Origin: Ascidiella aspersa
Lineage: Eukaryota
Direction of reading: 5' to 3'
Length of the DNA: 64,000 nucleotides
Assembly (NCBI GenBank): GCA_963924565.1
Contig: OZ004615.1
Span: forward strand, 16,988,001 to 17,052,000
Positions within the stretch are counted from its first letter, which is position 1; every line of letters starts with the position of its first letter. Under the pieces are notes generated by a model. It did not search any database. It was not told where the DNA came from and worked only from the letters and a program-made list of their open reading frames with translations. Shown here piece by piece: positions 3,601 through 58,764 of the stretch. The position numbers were made by a program, and so were the translations under genes.

Positions 3601-6600
3601 CATCTGTGCAGAAGGTATGTCGTTGAGTTTAGAACAGCTTTTCTTAAAGTCGATATAAGGTGGCCCTGCGTAAAATAGTTTAAACAGGTCCGACAAAATG
3701 ACTATTTTGTCCTACAAATGAACCTAAAATAGAATAATTAAATAAAAAGCGATTTAAATGCACCCGTCCTGTTGATACGTGCCCTAGATTTGTTTTAAAT
3801 GTATTTATTTTTACTTACAGAGATCATTTTTTTTTGTATCGTAAAACTTTTACTTTAACATTGTTTTTTAAAAAAAAGGGCGTGGATCCTAACAGGTTAA
3901 AACGGTCCAGTCATGCAAGTAATTAAAAAAATGCAAAATATTCAGTTTGAAATACTCAGGTGTAAAGTTCTTTTTTAATTTTGTTGGTTTTGTTATTGTG
4001 CCTATTTTTTTTTTATTTTGGGTTGGTTTTGTTATTGTGCATATTTTTTTATTTCAATAAAAAGGTTACCATGGCGACCTGTGCGCTCACGAGATTGATG
4101 AGTGCGCCACCCTGCGGCCATGCGCGTCGGGTTCCACTTGCGTCGATCTGTTGGCCGACTACCTCTGCCTTTGCCCCCCGAATCTGGGGGGTAAAACTTG
4201 CTCGGTGACGTTGCGCGGCTGCGATACGCACCAGTGCGCACGTGGTTCTTTGTGCCGGCCTTACCTTGAAAATGAATATTTGGGTAAAATTTTACAAATA
4301 ATTTAAGGCTATTTTAAAAGGTATGATTTGTTTTATACAACTCTCGGAAAAGCCATTGCTGACTTACCGAATCTGTCGATTAATTATCAATATTTTATTG
4401 TTTTATACAACATACAAATTGTCAAATTAAATGTTGGAAAAAGTTTAAACGATAAGTAAGATGCTCTTTTTTGTTAAATGGAATGATGTTTTACTAATTA
4501 AATATGTAAGGTAGATTTTTTTCTTTCTGCATGATTGTCACTATACCCCTAAACATTTTCATAGGTTTTTCACTTGAAATATCTTCGGCTTTATTATTAG
4601 TTAAACATTAACCACGAAAATGTTGACTGTGCGGTAGGTAGTTTCTTAGTTAAATAGTTAACATTAGTTTTGCTACCAAATATTTTTAGAATTATTTTTG
4701 TTATACTGGACACTGTTTTATTCTTATTAAACCAACCATGGGATGACTTCAAAAACAATTTCTTGTGACTATCTAAACCTAAGTGAAAACTGTAACGGTT
4801 AAATAATAATATTATGGAGCAACAAAACAACAGAAATAAGAAAAAAACAATCATTATATCTTGTTTATTTCCGTTTGTAGATATACACAACTACACCTGC
4901 CAATGCGATCGCGGTTTCACTGGGAGGTTTTGCGATGTTACGACAGCAATGTCGTTAATCGAAAGTTCTCGAATGCTGTTCAATTTGCCTCAGGACGGTG
5001 GCGTGAATGACGTCAACGTACAGTTCCGGACTACTCTGTCGAACCTGCCGCTGTTTTCGCTAACTTTCATTGACGAAAATGTAACCCTGAAGGTTTGTTT
5101 GTTCAAATGTTGCCTGTGACAGGTTTGACACCCTATCATAATGATTGTGTCACGCGCTCGGTATTTTTGTTATGGGTAAAGCTAAGCATCGAAATATTTT
5201 CCTGTGTAGCGATATTTTTCGAACAATTTAAACGAGAAATTGTTCCTAAAAGCATTTTTGTTTGGAACTAAATTAAAAGCATTTACCCGAATCGATAAAA
5301 ACCTGAACTAGGACTAGACATTGGTGTGTAACATAGGTAAATTAACTTTTCAACATATCCATCCTGCGTTGTGTAGAGTTGATGTGTGTTGCTCGAGTTC
5401 CGTTTATTGTGACATTCTAGTGAATTACCTACAGAAAAATCTTGTAGAGTGCCACAATCTATTTACTATTTCTTAGGGGTGCCGCTAGCCATAACAGGCT
5501 AAGAAACACTGGGTTAACCGTTCAACATCATTCAGAATCTAAAGACTTTATTTGTTCACACATCTCTTTTAGATCAGTATTAACGAAGGACGACTGAATT
5601 ATTTTCTCGCTACTTCAAGTGCCAATCAAGCTACGTACAACGTGACTTTAAGCGACAAAGAATCTGGTTTCATTTCGACGGTGAACGACGATACGTGGCA
5701 TTCCGTTTCCATTAAATGGCAGCAAAAGTTGATTTATGTAAACTTTGCTTCAAGCGAAATCGTTATCGATGTCCAACGATCTGTGAACAACAACCTTGAA
5801 GGTGTTTACGAGATTTAGTTAGCTGATGTTTCTATCCTTTGCCTTTCGCTTGTTTTAAATACGTTATTTTTTTTATGAAATTTTAAAGTTGGTATACTGT
5901 CTCGATACAGGCAACCTCTTGTATAATGAACTTTAGAAGGTGATATCACTAATATATATAAAATAATAAAATATTGGTAAAATGAGTTTCGATTTTTACT
6001 GCTAATTCCTTTTGGCAAAGTTCATGTGTTTTGTAATATTCGGCTTGTTGGGACATTATAGGAAACCACCTAGCCGAACCACAGATACTTTGCAATGGAG
6101 TGCCGTAACCTCAAAACTGTTGAAAAGAAAAGAACTGACTTAGACCATGAGAAAAACCTTAAGCTCAACGTATTGTGGATTACTAAATGTTTGCTTAATT
6201 ACTCGCGACTAAAATGAATGTGTCTTTAAACTTGTTTTACACCACAGCGATGAGTTTATTATTTCAAAATATTTTATTTACCGATATATCTATAGGAGAC
6301 ATACTCATGTTCGGTGGCGGTTACATCGGCTGCATTCGTGATGTAACAGTTGGACCAAGCACGCTTAGCTTGAATGATGCAGTCTCCTATGATGACGTCA
6401 CAGGCGGATGCAATCGAAGCATTGAATGTCACAACGATTCATGCAGCGGAAGGGGAGCTTGTATTGACTTGTGGACCGAATACCGGTAAAAATACGAATC
6501 CTCTTTGTTTTGCTGCAACTTTCATTAAAAAATTCCAGTAAACAACAGGTTCTTGTCCTCCAACAGAACACTTGATGCCGACGATTAACTATCTAAAATT

Positions 6601-9600
6601 TAATAATAGCTTGAGAAGCGCACCGCTTTCGATTTTATTTGCCGCTAGTTGAAAAACGTTGCCGATTGTTTTGAAAGCCTTTCTTGATCGACTTTCCTTT
6701 GCGGCTTATAAGCTCTTTTATGTGTTAGTATATTTCCGTGTTTGATAAACTAAATTGTCAGATATAAAAAGCTGATTTGTCCTAAATTGGTTCTAACGGA
6801 TGCTCCATACACTTTTTGTTTTTATTTGTTTATCTATTTTTTGTTATACATTTATTGACTGGGCTTATATTTCGTTTCATTTAGATGCATTTGCACGAGG
6901 CCCTATGTGGGAAGTGACTGCAATTTTTCCCTCACGCCTTCAACATTTAGTTATATGGATACCTCGAGCTTTGCCCAGTTTCAGGTGAGCTAATAAATAA
7001 TGTAGGGCCTGTTGGGATGATGTGAGAATATTGTATTTCTTTAACATCCTTTTCAAAACAGAAAAAATGCGGGTCATACTTTTGCTATTCAATTATTGTG
7101 TTTGTATTTTAGTAACAACCTCCACGGGGGCTGCTATTGTTGTTACAATGACAAACTTACCTAGAAGGTTTATCGGTATTTCTTGTTATTAAAAAAATGT
7201 CCTATCGTCGTTCAACTTGATTTTGTGTTTTTCAACAATATACTATTTCAGCTCCCTTCTCCCCCTGTTTCGACTTTCCAACTTTCCGCCTTCATCAAAA
7301 CAAGAGAGCCTGACTCTTTTTTTCTCTCCACCACGGATGACGTAACACAGGATCCCAACGCCACGGATTATTACTCGGTTGTGGTGGGCATCGAAGACGG
7401 AAAACCCATGGTCAGTCGATTTTATTTTGTGAAAAATAGTTTCCACATTTGCACCCTACAGTAGCTGCATCAATATCATGGATCGCGAATTAATACTATT
7501 TATTCGAATGTCTTTTCCGTCATATATAGATTAATTTTGCAGTCTGAAAAACCATGTTGAAAAAAGTTTTTGTATTAATCAATTTTAAAAAGCGAAAAGT
7601 CTAAAACCAGACCATAATCTGTTACACTTAGTATACGGTAACTACCCGCCGTTTCAAATTATGAAAAAAATCTATTTGTGGATACAAATATTTATTAAGA
7701 AAGATTAATGTGATATAGTTTCCAATTAGCTAAATGTTTTATCTAGGTTTCACTTGGAGAAGCTGTATTTTACCCTTATTTGCAAGAAAGTGGTGGCGTG
7801 AATACAGAAGGAAAAACGCTATCAGATGGAAAAACTCGTTTTATCTCCATTCATATCGATGATCGTAAAATGTCTTACACAGACGACGAAACGTGGGTGG
7901 AAATATTTGATTTATTTATAATATTGTTTCAGAAAATTTTGTAAAATGTTGTGACCTTTTAATGTGAAAAAAATACACTTTCCTTTTTATTTCGGATAAT
8001 TCTATACCTTTCCCGCGATTACCTTTCATATCTCCAAAAGAAGATTTCTGTTATCTTACTGCTCTCTACTTTTTCCACCAGAACATTTGAGCAAACGTTG
8101 CCCAAAGCTCTCAACATAACAACCTCAACTATTTACGTTGGATTGATGCCCAAGAGACACGGGGGTGAGTGATCTAATGCCTTGAATAGTCATGAAACCT
8201 ACAAGAACGTATATTCCAGTGATTCTAAACAGTGGAGCCTGGGGCGCCTAGTTTTTGTTATTTTTATTTCGGGTGGAGAAAATACAAGCTAACCCCGCTC
8301 TAACATACATCATTTATTTTATGTGATTAGCCATTATGTTTTAAAGCAAATTTCTGCATATCACTAACCTTGTTGGCATTTAAAATGAAGATTGAATTGT
8401 ATTTCTTTGTTTTGTTAATTGCTTCGCTTTATATATCCCTAAAATTTAATAGAATTATAAAAAAGGCAATAAAATTGTACTACGATAAAAAAGGGTGGTG
8501 AATTTGCCCGCGACTAAAATTTCGAAAATCACTGGTGTAAGCGTTACCGTGCAAGTAATTTATTTGGCTTCAGATCTATTATAAATATTTCTCAGGGCCT
8601 TTACTGATGAAACAGTATTATATTTTTTAATATTTTGGGTAAAACAACAGTTTCATACAAGTTTTTCTTTTCAGCCCGCACTCGAAGGTCTTCCTACTCA
8701 TTGCCCCCTTTCAAAGGAGCAATCCAAGATCTTCAGTTCAATGGGTTCAGACTTCTCTTTAGCGGAAAGGAAACCAAGCTAATCGAAGGTAAATTTGAAG
8801 GACATAACTTCCCCAGTTTATAATTCACTTGTTATTTTGTTATTTTATTTTACCCCGAAGACAATGTTTTAAACTTACAGATATGTGCTATTCCGAACGC
8901 ATTGGCCCACGACAGTTAGATTTGTGTGGGTATTTAATTCATGGTGACCAATATTTTGTGTTTCCTTTTTACTTAAGATTCCAAGACACTAACTACTACC
9001 CCGCACAGAAACCACAAAATGTTAGTGATAGAAAAAATCGTAACTTTTTCTCGATATACAAGTATAAGGTTTATGGACATACGTTTTCATAAAGATATAT
9101 TTTGTTATTTAGCTGGCAATTTTCTTTTTAATAGTTTCAAAAATGAAATAATGATTACCATACAGATTCTGGCACTCCCAACTTTATTCTGCCCTTTACT
9201 GCACCAATCGATGTGAAGTTTGGCCTCGTGTCAGACCCGGTATGCAACAAAACCACTCAACCGTGCCAAAACGGAGGGGTTTGTGACGTCACATTCAACG
9301 ATTACGTATGTAATTGCACGCCACAATGGAAAGGAAGGAATTGCAACGACCCGGTGTTTTGCAAGTAAAGAAGAAGTTCATTTAAACGTTTTTTTGTGTG
9401 ATTTGACATTACTAATTTTATGTAATTTAGGAACTGCTGACTTTTAAGAGTTAAAAAATATTGGGAACTGGTTAAATAAAATATGTCTCAACGACATTAC
9501 TTTAATTACACTTTCATTCGCGAATACCATTTACTATTATAATAAAGCGTCTAGGTACGCGATTTATTTTGTTTGCACTAAAAAACATTAAGAATTGATC

Positions 9601-12600
9601 CACTCAATTCAAAACTTTGTTCACTCCCAACTAATGCGGGCCGTTTCCACGCGCACTTTAATTAAAAAATTAAATGTAATGTAACAAATGTTCGAAACTT
9701 AACTTTGCTTATTTTCCCTGTATTTTAGGCAATTGACTTGTCCCGGTGGCATGACTTGCCTAGACTTACCCGCTGGTGGATTCGAATGCCAAGCGCCAAT
9801 AACTATTCAACCTAACACCACCTTCCGCTTCAGCTGGGTAGCGATGGACTCACGAAACTTCACAACTGTGAGCTTCAGAATAAAAACAAGGTTGGTATTG
9901 ACAAGGCATTTGGCTTTTTATTTTATTTTTGTCCACCAATGGTGAACTTAACAAAGCGAAAATAAGAAACAGTAAAGAAATTAGGTAAGGCCTGTGGCTC
10001 GGTTCTTCTCATTGGCCAAGAACGAGGCCGGGAATTTCTGAGCAAGTCAGTAATGGTCTTATCAGAGTCCTCTGAACAACCTGTCTCAACTAGGGAGCAG
10101 GTGCCTCCATGGGGGTAGGGCCCGAGTTAAAACTGCGCAAGGCAGAAGGTAAACATTTTAACCTTTGTTAAGTATTTGGATAAAAGTAAAATAAGGATCT
10201 ACAGGGTACCGTTTATTTCAAAACCTACACAACAAAACTAATCCAAAAATAACCGTGAAGCGGAATTAGTGGTGGCTGCATATGCGTGTAAATTTTGAAA
10301 AAATACTCCTGTGTAATTGTGGCAACGTAAATTTAGCAGAAACAGGGTTGTTTTAAATTAAAGGCATTGATACTTTTAAACGAAAGTATTAAAATAAGAA
10401 TTTACGTCGTCTTGGTCTAATTTCCTTAATTAAATGGCGAGTAGGCAATTCTTTTGCTGTCAAATTATTTTTTCCGTTATCTGCGTGAAACTTTGTTAAA
10501 GTTTTCCAAGTAACAGCATAATCGTCATAGTCAAACAAAGCATAGTGTAAACTGAATATAAAAGGTGGTGAAATTACGTTTTAAAAGGTCTTCCGATCGG
10601 TCCATTTTGCATCTGTCGGACGACAGCAACGTACCACGCGTCGTTTTTCGTCTCGACCTGCACGGTAACCTTGCCATGACGTACGGTAACGTCACCACGT
10701 CGCCACGTCACGCTCTGGTGCCTCGACCAATCAACGATGGCGCTTGGCATGACGTTGAATTGCATCCGATTGATTCCAAGTGAGAATTTATGATGTGGTG
10801 TATGTTTGTTTATTGATTACAATACACAGCACGATTTATTTTAAACCCGGTTTTACCACCATTTTCTGTTTGTTTATAAAGTCATGCCGTCCCGTTTCTT
10901 TCTCGTTAGCCTTTATGAGCTGAACCTTAACCTAAAAAAAGTAACCTAAAGGTCTATTATGTTTTAGCAATAAGCTATCGCTGCCAGGCATAATGTATAA
11001 CCTTAAAAAGTTATGCATCGTTTAAACTTGACGGTGAGCAGATAAACAGGACGCCAACTCCTTCATCTTTTTTATTATTTTTAATCATACAACTGATGAT
11101 TGGCAATTTTGGTAACAACGTTTCCTTCACTTTTTGTTTGTTTTTCAGATATTTTCGTCTCACAGTCGACTCACAATACTCGACGCAAATCGACGCTCCC
11201 GACCGGTTATTGAGTGACGTCATGGCATCCAAAAGCGGTGCTTTGTGGGTTGGAATATCGGCTGAGGAATTGGCGTTTAAAGGTTGGACAGCGTAAAATT
11301 GGTTAGGATATCGAACACATTATAAATACAAAATATATTATTTGCATTGTTTCAACATTTTGTCGTAACTTAAAACTCGCCGATAACACTTAGTTCAGTG
11401 GAACCTTTTATGGCTTGCGGCACCTTGACTGGAATTTTCGTTGAGTATTTTACTGAAATGTCACTATAAATCAAACTGAAAAACACAATCAACTTAAACA
11501 TGTAGGAAAAAGTCATTTGATTTAATGATCTCTAACCGTACACAAATAGTTATAATAGGAAGCTTACCAATTGAGCAAAAAACAGATTCTTATAAATTCG
11601 CAAATACCTAGGCCTATGGGCACCCTTGATCATTAAAAATGGCACACCAGAGTTCCGCGACCCCCGGTTAATAACCACTTACATAGTTGTTGGCTACAGG
11701 AAGAAAAAACATTTTTAGCTTTAAACAACCAAGATTGTTTTCCCATTGCTTTAGGTTGCTTGGTCGATTTGCGAATCGGGGGTTTCCTTCTGCCATTCTA
11801 CGACCCCTACAAGCTGACCAATCACACTGCAGCGATGAGCTCAACGCCTTTCTATATAGTGACGTCACCGCCGCTTATGTTTGGCTGCCACGGCGATGAC
11901 GTGTGCAGGGAGGAGCCGTGTCAAAATAACGGAACATGTGTGGACGAGTTTAACAAATACAGATGCGTGTGTAGAAGAGGTATTTGGATTTGTAGAGTTG
12001 CTTAGTAGGTTGTCATATAAAGTTGCCCTAACAAGCATCTACCTAATCCAAAAAATGCGTATAGACTTTACTTTTAGTTTAAACTAGTTGTGTTTTGTTT
12101 CAGTATATCACTTTTTTCTTTCCAGGTTTCACGTCATCAAATTGTGACGTCAACATCGACAATTGCGTAGGCGTGACATGCTCGGCGAACGGAACTTGTC
12201 TCGATCAAGTGGACGGATTTCGGTGTCGGTGCTTTACCGGTTATCATGGTGAAAAGTAAGATCTATATTAAATTTGTTCATAAAACGTTAAGATACACGC
12301 ATATTTCGATAAGAATATCACTTTTAATAAATATAATGTTCGATGTACATTGCACAATAAATCAGAAAATATCGTAGTAGAAACCAGGGCTGCGGAGTTG
12401 GTTAAAAATAACACGAGTCCGACTCCCGAGAAAAAAATCCTCCATATTCTATTCCATCTTTACAATTTCCAGTTGGCGGCCATGTCAGACTCTAGTAGTT
12501 TTACGTCGTCTTACTCGAGTCCCACATCCGACTCCAGCAAAACAAACCGACTCCTCGAGTCCCGACTCCGACTCCGCAGCCCTGGTAGAAACTGTCAGAT

Positions 12601-15600
12601 GGTATAGAATCCATACCTTAGTAAATTTGGTACTTATGATGAACCTTATGTAAGTTTCACACATCGCAAGAAACCTCGATTACTATTTAATTATTAGCTA
12701 TTTGGCGTACTATCCACTTTGGTGGCTTTGAATTAGGTTATGTACCGGTTTAATGAGTCGATATGAAAAACTGTGTCAACGGAAATGCTACAACAATTTC
12801 CTCTGATTAAATATTACAATATTTCCCAGTTGTGAGTTGGAAACGCTCGAGTGCGCAAGTTCTCCATGCTTGAACAATGCCACGTGCCGCGATCTGGTTG
12901 GTTCGTTTCGCTGCGAGTGTGGCGACGGCCGGTTTGAGGGCGAGCGTTGTCAAATTAACGCGTCACAATCGTGCGGTGGTGACATCACAAATGAAAACCA
13001 TCCATGCGTGAACGGCGGAAGCTGTAGGAATGTCACCGAAGACGAAAAGGTGCGCACCATTTTGCCAATTGTTTTCACCCAAAGCTAAATCTTGTTTACC
13101 AAGAGAATGATCTGTCTTTACACAAAACAGTAAAATTATTTTAAAAATGCAAGTCACTAAACATTGAAAAAAAAACCTATTTTTTTACTCTAGCAAACTA
13201 TATTTTTCTATGCAATGTGTGTTTGTAAAATAATTTTTTTATTGGAACACCTTCTAAATTAGAGAAATTATATTCACGATTTGTTGGCTTTGCATTTATA
13301 AAACGTAAACTTTTTGTTTTCAATATATATATTAACGTTTTTTGCCTTTTAACTTGAATGCATAGTTTACAATTTTGTATAATAAACACTTATCTTATAA
13401 TACATCGCACAACTGGGTGCCCCAAGAGATTCTTAAGTATGCCGAGGGACTTCTTTTTTTATTTATTGAAATAAACTCATTTACACTTCATATGGCAGAT
13501 TTAAAGGCATAGGCTACTGTCGAATTAATAACTGACTGTATTCATTATAACCTATTGCCTTGACGTGTATTAAGCGGTGTTGTCAAGGAATTACACTTTG
13601 TAGAAAGTGTTTCACGATTTTTTTTTCGTGTGTCCCATACTAGTTGAAAACTACTGTAGTGTCCTCTTACACAGCAGTGGTCTCCAACCTGTAGGTCGCG
13701 ACCCCAAGTGGGGTCACCTAAAATTTTGTGGAGTCGCTATAGCTCACTATATTCTTTACAATGACGTCTTACTAATAAACGTTACTGACTGCATCGTCTA
13801 AATTAAATTGCTGTGTTTAGGTCTTAAGAGCTGCTAATTCAAAAAAAAAAGAGCTGCTAATTCAGCTAAAGTGACATTTGACAAAATTAGGTTTCTTTGA
13901 TTTAGCGCAGCGAATGTCGCACTTTCTCAAATTGTTTCATTGCGACATTCGTTCAATAAGTTATAAATGAGCTGTTTTTTTAACACGTCAGCGTTTTGTT
14001 ACTTAACTTTGGCAACGTAGTTTGCAGATATAAGGACTAGGCTTTATGTTCTTAAATATAACAGCGGATACAGTAAAACTCGGTAAAAGTGAAATACTCT
14101 TTCAGCAAATATTTACATGTGGACTTCGATGCAATCACCGTACCCGACTCTGTCAAATTTTATTATTACACCCCATCCCGTTTTTAAACTCATAGTTTGT
14201 GAAGTGGAGTCAGCGCAATGAGCATATTAAAAACGAAACCTCGTAACGCTTGGAAATAGAGCATGACATGCGGTTATGCTTATGCAAAAGGGATGCAAAA
14301 ACTAGTGGATACTAGGCAGGCGCAATAATATTTTTATTTGTAAATGGGTCGCAATGTAAATTCTGATTACATTTTATTTAAATTAGGGTCGCTTATTAAA
14401 AAGGTTTAAGACCACTGCTGCTATACAGTAAGACAAACAAATTAAACATACATATAGTTTTTTACATTTATTTTTTTTTTGTAACATTTATAACATAAAC
14501 AGCAAAAAGTCAACAATTTACTAATTAAACGTTCTACTGTTTTCTTCAGATCACGTTTGCGTGCGAGTGCCCTCGTATGTACACCGGTTCAAGGTGCGAG
14601 TCAGCAATTGACCCGTGCGAGGACTCGGTCTGTGTGAATAATTCCACCTGTGTGGCAAACTTGGTAAGTTGGGAAAAAAAAATTAGTTAAAGCTTTGCGT
14701 TGTTTCAAGCTGGAAACAGAAACAAATTCCTGGTTAACAAACGTTTACATCTGTCACGTCAAAACTAAATCTCAATAATATTTTTTTGGTATACATTTAC
14801 AATTACATCGTCTAAATTTTAAAACGTCAATCAGTAGTTCCTAAACTATGTGCCTTGATAGATTTTTCGAGTGTGGCACGAATTTTTTGTCATTTGACAA
14901 CTCACATGAATGTGGTATTCACGTTTACCTTGTTTAGTAGGGGTAAATGAGAAAGTTTGTTTTGTTAAAAGTGTTTTTCTTAGCTGTGAAATGACAAAGT
15001 TGGATAATCACCAGTCTAAAAATACAAGTACTTGTAACGTTTTTCCTCCAAAAAATATTTTTCAAGTTACAATAATTACGCTCCTTACATCTTATGGTAA
15101 ATACACGAGTCACCTAAGCATTTTGCGCTCCATATATAGTTATTCATCTGTCGGGTGATTTTGTTTTGCGGCAGACTTCGGCGACGTTCACCTGCGCATG
15201 CGAAGAAGGTTACACGGGCGCGACGTGTCAGCACGTGATTGGTCGATGCACGAGCGCGCCGTGTCAGAACGGCGGAAGTTGCGTAGACGGAAAAAGTGGC
15301 TTCCGGTGTCTCTGCCCGAAAAGTGAGTATCTGTTGACTGAAAAAATGTGCACGACAAAATGGTCTTAAAGAGTTCTTTGCATATGCAAAATTTCCTGTC
15401 GGAAAAAAACTCATTTGTCGTGTTCTTCTGTTAGTCAAACGTATTGTACCTTTCATAGATCATAGATACACTAAAACCATCCATAGAAACACAAATCTTG
15501 TACCATTAATAGAAACAGAAATACACACATATAGAACTGTTACTGTCACTTCGTACTTGCCATTCATACAGCAACATCTGTTAAAAGGATACATATGTGT

Positions 15601-18600
15601 TTTTGGTGGTTTTATTAAAACAATTCCCATGTGATGCAGCTCTGCAAAACTATCCAGCGGTTAACTTAAAAAACATTGTAAAGACAATAAAAATCTAAAC
15701 TATAGCGGTAATAAAATATATTATCTCTAAATATAAGAAAAAAAAAATATTTTCACATGCTAAATATAGAATTTTAATAGGAAAACCCAGTAAGACGAAC
15801 TAGTCCTAATAGGTTTCCTACGTGTCTAGTGAAGCTTTGTTCACATTTCAATTTCAGGTTACACCGGTTTCACGTGTAACCTGCTCAACAATTGCACTCG
15901 TCCAGGCAACACCACGATGTGCGAAAATGACGGCGAATGTTTGGTGAATTTGGACAAGCGAGGGACGCCAATGTACACCTGCAATTGTACGCGTCTATAC
16001 GCAGGTGCGACACTATGCGGTTCGGCAAAAGCCTATTGGTATCCGTTGAGTGGCGCACGAGTTCAACGCAATGGTTTTATAATTGAATGTAAACCAAATG
16101 AACTTAGCTTGTATGACTGTTTACTTATAAACTGGACCGTTTATTATGATGTGTATGCATTATATACTATACAATTAGTTCAGCCCTTTTAAAGTTATAC
16201 ATACAAACGATAATGACTGCCTTACAATAGGACTAATTCATTTCAGTATTCCTTATTCAAGATACCTGGTGTATTATTTACATTGTGTATTCGATAAATC
16301 GTACATTTTGTTTAAATGTTAAAAACTGCAAATTTCAATTTATCTTGTGTATCACAGTGTGAACGCATAAACAAGACAAATATTTGCTCGCAAAACTATG
16401 CAAGTAATATTCCTTTCCTTAGAATTGCCGGAGGCCAAAATAGTTTCACGTACGCAAGCGTCGAAGTTAGACAGAAATGCAAGTCAGGATGACGCGCGGG
16501 AATTCCCCGCCATGCATTATGTAACACGTCTCTTATCTCGCCTCAGTTATATGCCTCCCGGTATGCTGACTGTCAAATTTCTACCTTCCTCGTTTATGTC
16601 AAGTCATACTACTGCCGACATGATAAGATTTAATCCTTAAGAAAAAAGGTGCCGTGTTACATAATGCGGTGACTCTTTCGCCGTTTCGCGTGTGCGAACT
16701 TCTACGATTTCTTGATTAAGTTTTTGTTGTCAAATGCGCGCTCTATCCGGCACGTTTTTGCATTTCAGGAAACTCCTGCCAGTTTGCCAATCCTTGCTTG
16801 AACGCCACTTGCCACAATGGCGGCACTTGTGTCGTCACCGACAGCATTGTGACGTCACAGCTGGATGCTGTGTCATCGTTGTGCCAATGCACGGAAGGAT
16901 TTTCTGGACCCGATTGTTCAGAGGTAGATTGTCGTATTGTCGTATGCACCATGTTCAGACAATCTATATTTAATAAAAATATAGATTAAATTTTACTCGC
17001 TTTTAGTTAAAATACAGTAGTAGTGTCTGGATTTTATTTTATTTAACTTTCTTGAGCATAATTAAACACACAAATCACCAAAATGCTCATCGCAGATTAC
17101 TTCATCATTTACGTATGGAAACCCTTGGCTTATCATTGGTCCCTTGATTGGCGCAGTCGCCTTATTGCTCACGATAGGAATTGTTACGTCATTGGTTTGT
17201 TACGTAAGAGGGGCGAGAGCGAACCGGGGGGTATACAGTCCCCAGCAGACTGAAAGTATTGTCGTGCCCTCCCTCAAAACCCCGTTGCCTCCGAAACAAC
17301 CCCCGGAAAGACTCATCTGAGTGGTTAGTCGTGCATGACGTGGTGATGTGACGTCATGTTCTGTTGTGACGTAACGCAGTAAGTTCCGACGTCACCACAC
17401 GAACACTGTATAATAGCTCGGTGAATTGTTACGTTATTGCACGACGAGGTGACGTGACGTATAGCGTGGTGAATTCTGACGTCACTTGGTGTTGTTGTAA
17501 GCATGACGTGGTGACGTAGTTCGTTGTTGTGGTTTCGATTTTGAGTGAAGAAACTTTTGGCATAATTTATGTATAAAGTTTTGAAGGTGGTCCAGCAGCA
17601 CGACTGATGTAAAAAACCTTTTATGATCTCGGATCACATATTAGGCATGCCACAATCGTTAGATGTTTTATTTTAATTGTTCGACACCGTGTAAAAAAAC
17701 ATAGTGCTGGAATGAGTAGTACACAGCGTCGAATCATAATCGGTACGAAAGTTTTACACGAAAGCACAAACTTGTCAGTTGAATACTGAAAAGTCCTATT
17801 AGCCACTTGTTGTCATGAGTACATAATAAAACTATGATAATTAGTCGATTAGTGTTTCCATTAAGTCGGCCTACATTACCGAGAGGTAAAGACAAATATA
17901 TTTCACTGAAGTGGGCGGTTCAACCTGTATTGTCCAATATTACAGTCAATGACAAGAAGCACGTAAAGGGTAAACATTCTCAATTTCACTTTGTAGGCAT
18001 AACTAAAATTGGTCACCCTTCTTAAACCTGGATATGTGTATTTTTACATTTTCTCTAACTGCCTTAACCCAGTGGTGGTATTTGGAACATTAAGAACAGG
18101 TTCTCCCCTACTAACCGTTTGAGATTGCTTTACAATGCTTTACACCAACAAAAATGTCTACAAAATTTTTGAATCGTTTGGCCATAACCGACTTCTATTA
18201 ATGCATGTAAACTCCCGCAAAGATTCTCCGGAGCGCTGTATTTTTATTAAATGGAGAAAAACTCCTGATACCCGATATCTGAAAATTTTAAACAGGAGTT
18301 TCTGGTAATATATGGAGCAGAGCCTATACTGGTGCCAAGTGTGGTATCGGTACTAGCAATACACCTTGCTTGATCTAATATCAAACGCAATTTCTTTCCT
18401 AAATAAAGCTTTCTTAAGGAATAATGAAAAAAATTAATTTAACAAACCTTCGTTACACTAAAGCAAATATTCGCCAAATTACGTAAAAAGATAACATTCA
18501 AAGGTTTTGTTGTTTTAATTTTGCCTATTTGATCATGATAATGACATAATTGGGTGGTTTTCAACATCACGGTATTAATGCGGCCGTATTTTCCGAAAAA

Positions 18601-19121
18601 CTGCGCACTCCTAAGTTTCATTAAGACAACCTCAACGGCCAACCAAAAATCTTTCCTTGGTCAAACAGAGCACTACAACTGACGCTTAAATTTGTAAATG
18701 TCCGATACTTCGCAATATATTCCGATACCCGATGCTTAAGACAAGAAGTACCTTCTTAATTCGAAAACCGTTTGAAGATCGCACCAAAATCTCAAAAAAA
18801 TCGCGTACTAAAACCTCCTTTTGACAATTCCAAAATCTTTTCCTGAACGTTTACCACTTTCTCGTCCTACAGACTTCCGGGCTGCTCTCCTCCACTTCCA
18901 TGGTGATCCTGATCGCTGCGGTCGGCGGCGCCGGCATCCTTCTCCTCGTGGTCCTGGGGGTGTTCGCGGGCGTCTCGGCCGCCATGGACCGCCGCTCGAC
19001 CTCCGGCACCTACTCGCCCAGCAAGCAGGAGGCCACTTCGGTTCCACCGGGCCTTTCCGGCCTCGAGTCGGAAATGTGGACCGAGCTGAAGCCGCCGCCC
19101 AAGTGCGAGCGGCTCATTTGA
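635..19121 (+). CDS. crb: Crumbs family apical polarity protein, 5'-truncated by the window (EGF repeats - LamG1 - EGF - LamG2 - EGF - LamG3 - 8 EGF - TM - short tail)
   Basis: 25 shared GT-AG exons with continuous phase: 635-835, 1359-1494, 1997-2108, 2567-2742, 3470-3614, 4065-4283, 4881-5092, 5573-5801, 6296-6485, 6885-6984, 7252-7410, 7747-7892, 8082-8164, 8675-8788, 9166-9364, 9729-9890, 10588-10779, 11149-11282, 11755-11979, 12126-12255, 12830-13049, 14550-14663, 15175-15322, 15858-16004, 16769-16923 (4048 nt). These join to either 17096-17320 or 18873-19121. Protein evidence: Ca-binding EGFs (IDEC..PC.N), the Crumbs-specific long-loop EGF CIERSDQSSYGVHFNATFSYETAHGFVCIC, LamG motifs (FRTTL, NDDTWH, GCIRDV, FKGAIQDL, NDGAWH, FKGCLVDLRIGG), and tails with GxYSP..E and ERLI. 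Confidence 0.97.
3981..4053 (+). repeat. about 40-bp tandem duplication just upstream of a Crumbs acceptor
   Basis: gttggttttgttattgtgc.tattttttt occurs twice. Confidence 0.7.
8217..8534. mobile_element. degenerate hAT-type MITE
   Basis: Ends CAGTGATTCT / AAAATCACTG; TSD not convincing. Confidence 0.45.
11396..11680. mobile_element. degenerate copy of MITE family 1
   Basis: Shares long blocks with 46927-47221 (gactggaattttcgttgagtattt, tgtcactataaa, accaattgagcaaaaa, ggcacccttga, cacaccag). Confidence 0.8.
12385..12584. mobile_element. hAT-type MITE
   Basis: TIR CAGGGCTGCGGAGT...ACTCCGCAGCCCTG, subterminal CGACTC repeats, perfect 8-bp TSD GTAGAAAC on both sides. Confidence 0.9.
13675..14417. 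mobile_element. hAT-type non-autonomous element
   Basis: Ends CAGTGGTCTCCAACCT / AGGTTTAAGACCACTG with GGGTCGC subterminal repeats; TSD degenerate. Confidence 0.7.
16514..16667. repeat. inverted repeat / fold-back (probably a MITE core)
   Basis: Perfect 15-bp arms GCATTATGTAACACG (16514-16528) and CGTGTTACATAATGC (16653-16667), with further partial pairing inside (tcttatc/gataaga). Confidence 0.7.
17096..17320 (+). CDS. crb: Crumbs alternative terminal exon A (TM + 37-aa tail)
   Basis: Acceptor ctcatcgcag, phase 0, matching the donor after 16923. Encodes ITSSFTYGNPWLIIGPLIGAVALLLTIGIVTSLVCYV-RGARANRGVYSPQQTESIVVPSLKTPLPPKQPPERLI* with no internal stop. Absent from the ORF track because it has no start codon. 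Confidence 0.9.
   Translation: MTSSFTYGNPWLIIGPLIGAVALLLTIGIVTSLVCYVRGARANRGVYSPQQTESIVVPSLKTPLPPKQPPERLI
17336..17518. promoter_or_regulatory. dense (T)GACGT / CRE-like motif cluster immediately after the exon A stop
   Basis: About 9 GACGT cores in about 185 nt, including perfect TGACGTCA at 17349 and 17477. Function is inferred only. Confidence 0.5.
17825..17830 (+). terminator. candidate poly(A) signal for Crumbs isoform A
   Basis: AATAAA about 500 nt after the exon A stop and upstream of the exon B acceptor. The AT-rich background makes this weak evidence. Confidence 0.35.
18873..19121 (+). CDS. crb: Crumbs alternative terminal exon B (TM + about 45-aa tail)
   Basis: Strong acceptor ccactttctcgtcctacag, phase 0. 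Encodes TSGLLSSTSMVILIAAVGGAGILLLVVLGVFAGVSAA-MDRRSTSGTYSPSKQEATSVPPGLSGLESEMWTELKPPPKCERLI*, with canonical GTYSPS..E, EMW..PPP and ERLI. Confidence 0.93.
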   Translation, partial: TSGLLSSTSMVILIAAVGGAGILLLVVLGVFAGVSAAMDRRSTSGTYSPSKQEATSVPPGLSGLESEMWTELKPPPKCERLI

Positions 19122-19281
19122 CGTCATTTTTTTCAGTGACGTCATTTTTTCTGTAGTTGAATTTCGAGTTTGCGGTGTCGGTCGGTTTTCTGCTGCACTT
19201 GGCTCCGGACAAATGATTTTAAGCGATGGCTTCGATCTGTGTAGATTTGTAAATGACAAGGTTAAAATATAACCTATTCGG

Positions 19282-19410
19282 CAACAAATATAAAATCCAA
19301 TTTTAGTCTGAAGGACAACAATTATAAAATCCCATTTTAATCTAAGAGACAACAAATACGAAATTCTATTTTAAACTGAAGGACAACAATTATAAAATCC
19401 TATTTTATTC
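19282..19410 (+). repeat. about 33-34-bp minisatellite (about 4 units) in the exon B 3' UTR
   Basis: Repeated taaaatcc.atttta.tctgaaggacaacaa units. Confidence 0.75.
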
Positions 19411-20105
19411 TAACTGAAGAAAAGCTTGGCTTCCATTTTATTGTTGTTTTTTTATAAACTAGTTCTGAACAAAAGGTCAACTTTTAAAAACATGACTTCT
19501 TGATCTTTGGACCCATTAGTTGTGGCGCTATTGTTATTTGGACACATTGCGCACAACAAAACATACTCTTTGCTACGTTCCCTCGTCGCCGTACTTTTAC
19601 GAAACTGTGCTTTTAAACTTTTATTTCGTTCTTGCTGTTCGAGAGCTGCTTTCTGCCTTTACACAGACTGATTTACCGATTGTGATGACTCACTTCTTCG
19701 TTGATATACGCGACCAGCTTTTATATTTGTACTTTTGTAGCGTGACATATAGTGTTCGTTTTATTCTTCAACTGTGTTTAAAACCTTTATTTCGAATATT
19801 TTTATTTTATTTGCGTCGTGCAATTAAATGCCAAGTGTGGTTTGACACCGCGATGTATATTTGCCAAATAGCGTTTCTTTAAAAACTGACCTTATAAAAA
19901 ATGTTTAATGTAACTTTTTGGTATTTAAAGATCCGAAATCTACCTGGTAACTGTATAATAGTACTGCAATACTGAATAGTGTTCACAACTGTCAATCAGC
20001 TATAAAATTTATACCTGAATAGTATTTCTTGTGGTGCATTTTGCTCTTATAGTGCTTTTTACCTGAAAATTGTTGCTGTGTATTTTTTAAATCTAAGTGA
20101 ACGGT

Positions 20106-20111
20106 AATAAA
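20106..20111 (+). terminator. candidate poly(A) signal for Crumbs isoform B
   Basis: AATAAA about 1 kb after the exon B stop; an ATTAAA also lies near 19823. Confidence 0.3.
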
Positions 20112-22041
20112 AACAAGTTTTACAATATCCAGAATCGACGGTTAATCCGTTAGAGGAGACGAATACAATATCTATCAACATTCCCCTTCCCCTGCGTACA
20201 ACGATTATCTCAAGACTCAAATAAGTTCGTTTCAAAAGACAAATATATAGCCGACTGAAAAATACTGGAAAACCCCGTTACTTACGCGTAAATGCTTTGT
20301 TTACGCAGGCACTATTGCTACATACGCAATGCTCTTCAATCGGCTATACGGTATACCCAAGTGTATACAAATATAGGGTATACAACTAAACAGCCTAACT
20401 AATTATTAGTGCCTGTCACAACTGTGACAGAATCTTTTTTCATAAAAAAAAAACTTATTTTTTAGGTCGAAAAATAATCGCCCGAATAATAACCTATGTA
20501 ATCCGTTTACTGAGCACTACACCGGGAGCCTTCAATAGATTGTACGAATCAGTTGACCAATTAAAGATCTGCATGCAAGAAAGGCCAGGCTAAAAATGTT
20601 AGCGGTGAGGTTGAAACTTGCGATCTCCGCCATACCATACGGATCCAGGAGGGCAAACATGTCACGCTTCTCGTAAATCTTTCATGTATACTTATATGTA
20701 CCACGAATTGAGGAAACCTTTTTATCCAAAGGACTGTGTGTGCAATGTCGCTGTCTAATATTTTTTAGATTTCGCGAGAATCTGGATGTTGTATCGTAAT
20801 TACCGCTTTTATAAATTCAAAGTTTATGAAAAAAGACATTATATGATTTTTGCGCCTGAACAAACTTATGTTTTTTTTTGGGCTGTCGGCTAGGTGAAAC
20901 ACAGCTTGTTTTTCATCGATCTATTTGTAACTAAATAAAACTTTTAAAAATTGTAACTTAATAAACTCAAATTTTCTTTACGGTTGTTTTTTCTGAAATG
21001 CAGACATACAAATATTGAATATATGAAAAAAGAAGCACTGTTTTTTGTTTATGAGGGTAAAATGGAAAATGATAAGCAATTAAACTATTTTAAATGATTT
21101 TAATTACCCAAACCAACTTTTGTTTTTGTCTGGTTTCTGTAAACTGATCTCAAAAAACAGCGGTTCTGTATAACGGTTAATTTTACCCGTCAGGTGTCAC
21201 TGTTGGAGCATTTTTGTAAACAGGGGATTTCCAAAAAATCGTGTTTACGAAATCTTGGCTTGAACTGAACCTTTCTCGTGATCATAAAGGCGTCACATGT
21301 TCGGCCTAACTTTTAGTCGTGTTAGAAATGGCAGACGTGCTGCTGCAGCCGCCAGTAGTTTACTACATCTAACATGTCTTATACTTAGTCCTATGGCTGT
21401 CATTTAAGATGTTCGGCAGTACATTTTATAGGAACATATGAGATGTTATATGTACTAAATAATTGGCTTAATGAGATGTATTATGTCAAGATTTTGTCAA
21501 ATTGTGAGACTAAACATAGAAGTTTGGTGGTGTCTCTGAAACTTGTACCAATACGTGATTATTTAATGATTTGGGTTAGGGTTTGGGCGGTGGCCAGTTT
21601 GGTGCATTCTGTTCCCAAAGCGAAGCAAGAAGCTCGAAATTTTATGGTGCAATATCGCGTAAACAGGATATCAATAATAAATTTTACATATTATTAAAAG
21701 CAACCTAACTTAGCCATCAAATCTGACTTAAAAAAAATTCAAGAAGGGCCATGACTCGACCTCCAGTTAATCGGATATAGGTTATTAATATTCGTTAAAA
21801 AATTCATAAATATCCAAAATTTCAAATTGGTCTAAAAAGCAAAGGGATATGTCGCATTAACTAATGTGTGGAAATCTTGAAGTCTTGTATATTTCTTGAG
21901 TTATGGGACTTTTATGCTGATGTTTTTTTGCTTATCTATGTAGACATATTAATTAAAATTGTTTTCAATGCATTACAGCGTATTTGCACACCTATGATGT
22001 ACTTAAATTGCTTAATGCCAGTTCTGTAAACAATATCAATA

Positions 22042-58682: not shown

Positions 58683-58764
58683 ATCAATCACTCGTGACGT
58701 CGCCATCAGTCACTCTTGACGTCACTATCAATTACACGTGACGTCACTATAAATCACTGCGTCA
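58683..58764. repeat. 22-bp tandem repeat (3 units + partial), each with a TGACGTC core
   Basis: atcaatcactcgtgacgtcgcc / atcagtcactcttgacgtcact / atcaattacacgtgacgtcact / ataaatcactgcgtca. Confidence 0.85.

Follow-up and report, generated by a model that had tools for sequence, protein, structure and literature searches.

The window analysed here, a 64,000-nucleotide stretch of the Ascidiella aspersa genome (assembly GCA_963924565.1, forward strand of contig OZ004615.1) in whose numbering positions are given, carries on its + strand one large gene of the Crumbs family, the 3′ part of which includes two exons, A and B, that each encode a transmembrane (TM) helix and a complete cytoplasmic tail. 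Upstream of these tail exons, a cysteine-pattern scan of the open reading frames (ORFs) revealed a long series of EGF-pattern exons on the same strand; many EGF and laminin-G-like exons lie between 615 and 14663, and the gene extends past the window start. Searches were made with single exons, and exons were concatenated (by script) only for locating the first stop. Pfam EGF matches above the cut-off were obtained for three exons (9147-9365, 11637-12002, and the last EGF exon, E = 6e-5), and Laminin_G_2 matches interspersed with the EGF exons were found at 5573-5815 and 10562-10780 (17.8 and 16.7 bits), short of the 22.9-bit cut-off, as exon borders interrupt the domains. The ectodomain has both the EGF-like repeats and the laminin-G domains expected of a Crumbs-family protein.

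The order of the 3′ exons was read from the DNA together with contigs of X3, a data set treated as RNA in view of its spliced contigs and produced in the study that also supplied the best DNA run. An EGF exon (15175-15322, frame open) is followed by an EGF-like exon (15858-16004) with an open, cysteine-rich frame-2 translation; the latter has an atypical cysteine spacing and was overlooked by the simple EGF-pattern scan, being revealed by the RNA contig. The last EGF exon (16769-16923) has a CAG acceptor and the donor gag/GTAGAT, and the translation of 16771-16923 is an EGF-like peptide ending in ...GPDCSE, in phase 0 and with GT next. Exon A (17096-17323, 228 nt, treated below as a cassette) encodes TM-A and a 37-aa tail, with its TGA at 17318-17320 and the donor gtg/GTTAGT at 17324. 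A conserved intron start (17324-17345) holds this donor followed by TGCATG, a Rbfox-type motif, at 17332-17337. The coding part of exon B (18873-19121) specifies TM-B and a 44-aa tail of the form RxxxGTYSPS...EMWTELKPPPKCERLI before its TGA, receives junctions from 16923 and from 17323, and is continued by a 3′ untranslated region (3′UTR, 19122-20125) with the poly(A) signal AATAAA at 20106, which is covered by an X3 contig (18996-20022) and by reads of a second data set, X5 (labelled RNA, stranded), up to the 19916-20112 bin.

Both tail exons are preceded by AG and continue the frame of the last EGF exon. The first yields a stop-free 74-aa peptide (17096-17320) and the second an 82-aa peptide (18873-19121), each followed by TGA; both have a strongly hydrophobic 19-residue core (Kyte-Doolittle means of 2.63 for A and 2.92 for B) with a basic residue next to it, and cytoplasmic tails of 37 aa (A) and 44 aa (B) that contain GxYSP and end in ERLI-TGA. 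Canonical Crumbs proteins are recognised by the FERM-binding motif RxxxGxYxPS, the C-terminal PDZ-binding ERLI and a cytoplasmic domain of under 40 aa (PMC5968619). Tail B fits the FERM-binding motif throughout and is slightly above the usual length, while tail A, with the pattern RxxxGVYSPQ...PPERLI, is of usual length and fits RxxxGxYxP, with Q in place of the final S. ERLI was invariant in 7 of 7 aligned tails, and the best PDB match for both peptides was the Drosophila Crumbs tail (4wsi/4yl8; E = 0.022 for B and 0.56 for A). Outside these features the two are divergent, the peptides being 32% identical. In these respects the original prediction, which had described the last EGF exon as ending in phase 0 at 16923 (now also seen as a donor in an X3 junction) and the two downstream exons as intact, stop-terminated, motif-bearing and otherwise divergent, was borne out by the translations and hydrophobicity profiles. 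Chance can be ruled out as the origin of the pair, because a six-frame search of the entire 308.6-Mb genome with either peptide returned only exons A and B and one CRB3-like exon on contig C8, with no other large-Crumbs tail exon.

Splicing to both exons was observed in X3. One contig (record 9, 612 nt, depth 8.6) joins 14663 to 15175, 15322 to 15858, 16004 to 16769 and 16923 to 18873, all with GT..AG borders and with 124 nt on the short side of the last junction, which links the last EGF exon directly to exon B. A second (record 10, 244 nt, depth 3.4) spans 17101-17323 and passes from there to 18873, again over GT..AG, with 22 nt on exon B. Both the skipping junction (16923>18873) and the downstream inclusion junction (17323>18873) are therefore present in X3 contigs, and since the donor at 17323 is spliced to 18873, exon A is not a terminal exon. 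X3 coverage is absent in 16961-17100 and in 17355-17551, so that exon A is sharply bounded at either end, as an exon should be. For the contig that takes in exon B and the 3′UTR the depth is 11.8, close to 8.6 plus 3.4, such depths being crude. In X5, of which 6% was sampled, 24 reads were recovered; they place the RNA on the + strand and cover the 3′UTR up to the bin ending at 20112. The locus is confirmed as one large Crumbs gene with two real and conserved motif-bearing TM-and-tail modules, both exons of which occur in spliced RNA.

These junctions changed the picture in one essential point. The two exons had been proposed as mutually exclusive terminal exons chosen alternatively, and this model is not supported by the 17323>18873 junction and the empty interval 17355-17551. 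Of the exon borders it gave, 16769, 16923 and 18873 were confirmed by the 612-nt contig and 17096 is retained as the likely start of exon A, while the ends of exons A and B move to 17323 and about 20125; of the two junctions it called for, 16923>18873 was seen and 16923>17096 was not among the X3 contigs listed. We nevertheless infer the latter, because the 40 nt that precede the contig start (17101) contain a single AG, at 17094-5, because the next AG upstream would include an in-frame TAA, because the phases of the EGF exon and exon A match, and because use of the AG at 17094-5 leaves the frame uninterrupted between 15175 and the stop of exon A.

Relatives were searched with both peptides. 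With exon A, a word-based protein search found no word-sharing protein among those of 41-131 aa, and an exhaustive phmmer search returned two short ORFs from two further species (P0002, 59% identical; P0003, 44%), which have in common the A-type signature YSPQxxE[ST], a juxtamembrane Cys and PxPERLI. The word-based search with exon B gave P0001 (56% identical), and a metagenome scan with P0001 led to L007, a 6.9-kb contig of a relative. L007 begins within an A-type exon (L007:3-107 plus stop) whose tail is identical to that of P0002, and 1.9 kb downstream it holds a complete B-type exon (1988-2230) with a strong acceptor, so that exon order is the same and spacing similar in L007 and the window; the tandem arrangement was examined in this one relative contig. 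DNA identity between the two is 74% for the coding part of A and 70% for that of B, and most of the intron and the flanks gave no alignment: outside the coding parts, only the block at the intron start is conserved (GTG/GTTAGTCGTGCATGACGTG in the window and GAGG/GTTGGTTTTGCATGAGGTG in L007, with 17324-17345 aligned to L007:125-147). This conserved donor block argues that the cassette layout holds in the L007 relative also, at a stop-to-donor distance of 14 nt instead of the 3 nt in the window. By the Nei-Gojobori method (window vs. L007), omega (dN/dS) was ~0.27 for exon A (35 codons, dS 1.2), and dN was 0.275 with saturated dS for exon B (79 codons). B-type exons were found in three species and the A-type peptide is conserved in three, and when aligned together the sequences of the different species cluster by type, A with A and B with B, which indicates that the duplication is older than the split of these species and that both copies were retained by selection. 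An old duplication held by selection had been anticipated, and the L007 pair, the A-type exons of two more species and the low omega of exon A agree with it.

Several features separate the two types. A-type tails have a Cys where the TM helix meets the cytoplasm, lack the EMW..LKPPP block and have Gln in place of the final Ser of the FERM-binding motif in all cases, whereas B-type tails carry a 7-aa insertion and a Cys at position -5. Tail A of the window (17207-17320) is without both Thr residues of the FERM region (N and V instead), a species-specific trait, as P0002 and P0003 retain GTYSP; the sole FERM-region change common to all A-type tails is S to Q after YSP. The idea of a phospho-resistant tail is therefore restricted to Ascidiella aspersa. 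Judged from these residues, the two tails may differ in their partners or in their phospho-regulation.

The arrangement is best explained, in our view with a probability of roughly 70%, by inclusion or skipping of a stop-bearing 228-nt exon A before a shared exon B. Skipping would join the last EGF exon to exon B and give a Crumbs protein with TM-B and tail B (RxxxGxYxPS, ERLI); inclusion would give one with TM-A and the 37-aa tail A (RxxxGxYxPQ, ERLI), presumably translated from the inclusion mRNA, in which exon B would serve as 3′UTR only. Both mRNAs would then have one common 3′UTR and poly(A) site. A stop codon close to the last exon junction is not read as premature (the 50-55-nt rule), and with its stop 3 nt before the donor the inclusion mRNA should escape such reading. 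The acceptor of exon A is weak (52% pyrimidines) and that of exon B strong (78%), and TGCATG occurs 8 nt into the intron after exon A, one of 13 copies on the + strand of the window; in L007, four copies lie within 210 nt after the exon A stop, with eight on both contig strands. UGCAUG downstream of an alternative exon promotes its inclusion and is the classic layout of an Rbfox enhancer, and a weak exon with UGCAUG a few nt from its donor, conserved and clustered in a relative, resembles in its sequence the cassette exons under Rbfox control. Because the exon A acceptor is weak and the donor-proximal UGCAUG conserved, we propose that inclusion is regulated, and the motifs suggest probably Rbfox-type, tissue-specific control. 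The own genome was also searched for Fox-1_C (PF12414), with no match, a result that is uninformative as the controls were equally silent.

Several points weigh against this explanation. X3 carries no RNA label, and within it the A-to-B junction is a single contig of low depth (3.4) with the short overhang given above, while the contig over exon A begins 5 nt inside the exon and the junction that should precede it was not found among those listed. None of the 24 X5 reads from the 6% of the run that was sampled falls on exon A, the dN/dS values come from few codons (35 and 79) and one species pair, the proposed Rbfox control is read from motifs only, and tail A is known here solely at the nucleic acid level.

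If A and B were instead two true alternative last exons, A transcripts would end past 17320 at a poly(A) site of their own and B transcripts at about 20125. An AATAAA at 17825 (505 nt past the exon A stop) and two read-sized X3 contigs at 17682-17995 would fit such an ending, and the differing stop-to-donor distance of L007 would allow terminal use in some species; we consider this quite unlikely, however, as the X3 contig runs from a canonical donor at the end of exon A exactly to the acceptor of exon B, coverage in 17355-17551 is zero, and the donor with its flank is conserved in L007 but the remaining intron is not. The absence of the EGF-to-A junction among the X3 contigs listed, together with the lower depth of the upstream-exon contig (8.6, vs. 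11.8 for exon B), would also agree with a different origin of the exon A transcript, from an internal promoter or with another upstream exon at its 5′ end; this RNA would be short, terminate in exon B and be either CRB3-like or non-coding. Vertebrate CRB1-B offers a precedent in coupling its own promoter with its own last exon (PMC7335077). Against such an origin, which seems improbable to us, no signal peptide or in-frame ATG precedes exon A (an ATG at 17083 lies in another frame), X3 coverage is absent in the intron before 17101, the phase of exon A matches that of the EGF exon, and the genome already holds a separate CRB3-like gene.

A regulatory “poison” or noise exon, which would only lower the output of tail B and whose peptide would be functionless, could account for the weak acceptor, the in-frame stop and a contig depth below that of the skipping form. 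It would leave unexplained why the peptide is conserved in three species at omega ~0.27 and why exon A has kept a TM helix, RxxxGxYxP, ERLI and a tail of the canonical 37 aa, and a stop 3 nt from the last junction is not a decay-inducing layout; we hold this to be very improbable. Readthrough of the exon A stop was considered as well, exon B being in frame behind the TGA (228 nt), and was rejected, since the 14-nt distance in L007 breaks the frame and the product would have an impossible topology.

Optional inclusion of exon A ahead of exon B, the explanation favoured here, was compared with known Crumbs isoforms. The vertebrate isoforms CRB1-A and CRB1-B each end in a last exon of their own that encodes a TM and an intracellular domain (PMC7335077; PMC8657784), and CRB1-B lacks both motifs and has its own promoter (Ray et al. 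2020, PMC7335077; PMC8657784). As in that gene, Ascidiella has one ectodomain with two C-terminal modules of TM and intracellular domain, each in its own 3′ exon, with the non-canonical module placed ahead of the canonical last exon. Unlike CRB1-B, which has no FERM- or PDZ-binding motif, both Ascidiella tails keep both motifs, and in contrast to the separate promoter, 5′ exon and transcript-terminating last exon of CRB1-B, exon A splices on to exon B; no alternative 5′ exon for exon A was seen in the thin RNA data. CRB3A (ERLI) and CRB3B (CLPI) share all but the end of the tail (Fan et al. 2007, PMC2064851; PMC5380682). There too, alternative splicing at the 3′ end alters the cytoplasmic end and hence the partners, but it uses alternative splice sites inside exon 4, affects the distal tail only, leaves the TM common and loses the PDZ motif, whereas in Ascidiella the TM and the entire tail are exchanged and ERLI is kept.

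The original prediction had stated that known isoforms never exchange TM and tail together, which CRB1-A and CRB1-B contradict, and had taken the arrangement to be undescribed. The exchange itself is known from the CRB1 pair; what remains of that claim is that both alternatives keep the canonical motifs, as the full-text literature searched, with incomplete coverage, held no report of two motif-bearing TM-and-tail modules in one Crumbs gene, nor of tunicate Crumbs isoforms. The locus is a new variation on the known switching of Crumbs C-terminal isoforms, not a new kind of system.

The CRB3-like exon recovered by the genome search belongs to a 92-aa ORF (L002:1498-1776, - strand, corresponding to G000:C8:4626759-4626974) on another chromosome than the window, and consists of a Ser/Thr-rich stub, a TM helix and a tail of the form KKRRAFEGKYSPS...PPPPERLI. 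Orthologues of it (P0004 and P0005) were found on two other large ENA contigs. With this gene on C8 and exons A and B, the lineage has three canonical tails from two genes. Like the vertebrate paralogues CRB1, CRB2 and CRB3, it has several canonical tails (FERM-binding motif and ERLI) that differ in the surrounding residues; the vertebrate tails, however, sit on separate genes and ectodomains, whereas two of the three in Ascidiella are attached to one ectodomain and the third is encoded on C8.

Further observations concern the intron between the two tail exons and its surroundings. A stretch of 668 bp (18126-18793) is missing from a contig of run X4 (organism B), the contigs of which run unspliced across splice sites, as DNA would. 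The joint 18125>18794 in that contig was rejected as a splice, as the ends are TG..TC with AAA between them, and was assigned to an insertion/deletion polymorphism; a segment of about 65 bp within the stretch (query 560-625) recurs on other chromosomes and attracts stray mismatched RNA reads. Just after exon A, the intron also holds a cluster of CRE-like GACGT/TGACGTCA motifs (17330-17520), with 7 of the 33 GTGACGT of the window within 170 nt, and two further TGACGTCA lie at and just past the exon B stop (19119 and 19137). The cluster could be an enhancer or a splicing element; it is absent at the matching position of L007. Over the whole window, TGACGTCA was observed 20 times vs. 0.7 expected; at least three copies in Crumbs exons derive from the codons of the EGF motif C-D-V (TGT GAC GTC A), and non-coding copies lie, for example, at 58717, 58739 and 40444.

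Among short signalling modules of cell polarity, the 37-aa Crumbs tail is one of the best studied: FERM and PDZ proteins bind to it, aPKC switches it by phosphorylation, and it has an input into Hippo signalling. If the proposed inclusion and skipping of exon A is correct, Ascidiella would provide a natural system in which one ectodomain carries either of two motif-bearing tails together with different TM helices, and with it a built-in comparison of non-motif residues, of the final S or Q of the FERM-binding motif, of the juxtamembrane cysteine and of the TM helix. It would further illustrate neatly how a coding cassette exon can terminate translation and yet leave no target for decay. Because tunicates and vertebrates are sister groups, the arrangement also bears on the origin of the vertebrate CRB1/CRB2 diversity and of the switch between CRB1-A and CRB1-B. 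As a tentative and rather doubtful extension, the tunicate A/B and vertebrate CRB1-B/CRB1-A exon pairs might descend from one ancestral tandem duplication of the TM-and-tail exon, an old feature of Olfactores, in which case tunicates would have kept the original state, with both tails binding FERM and PDZ partners, and the choice between them might be a cell-type-specific switch with neural or muscle inclusion via Rbfox.

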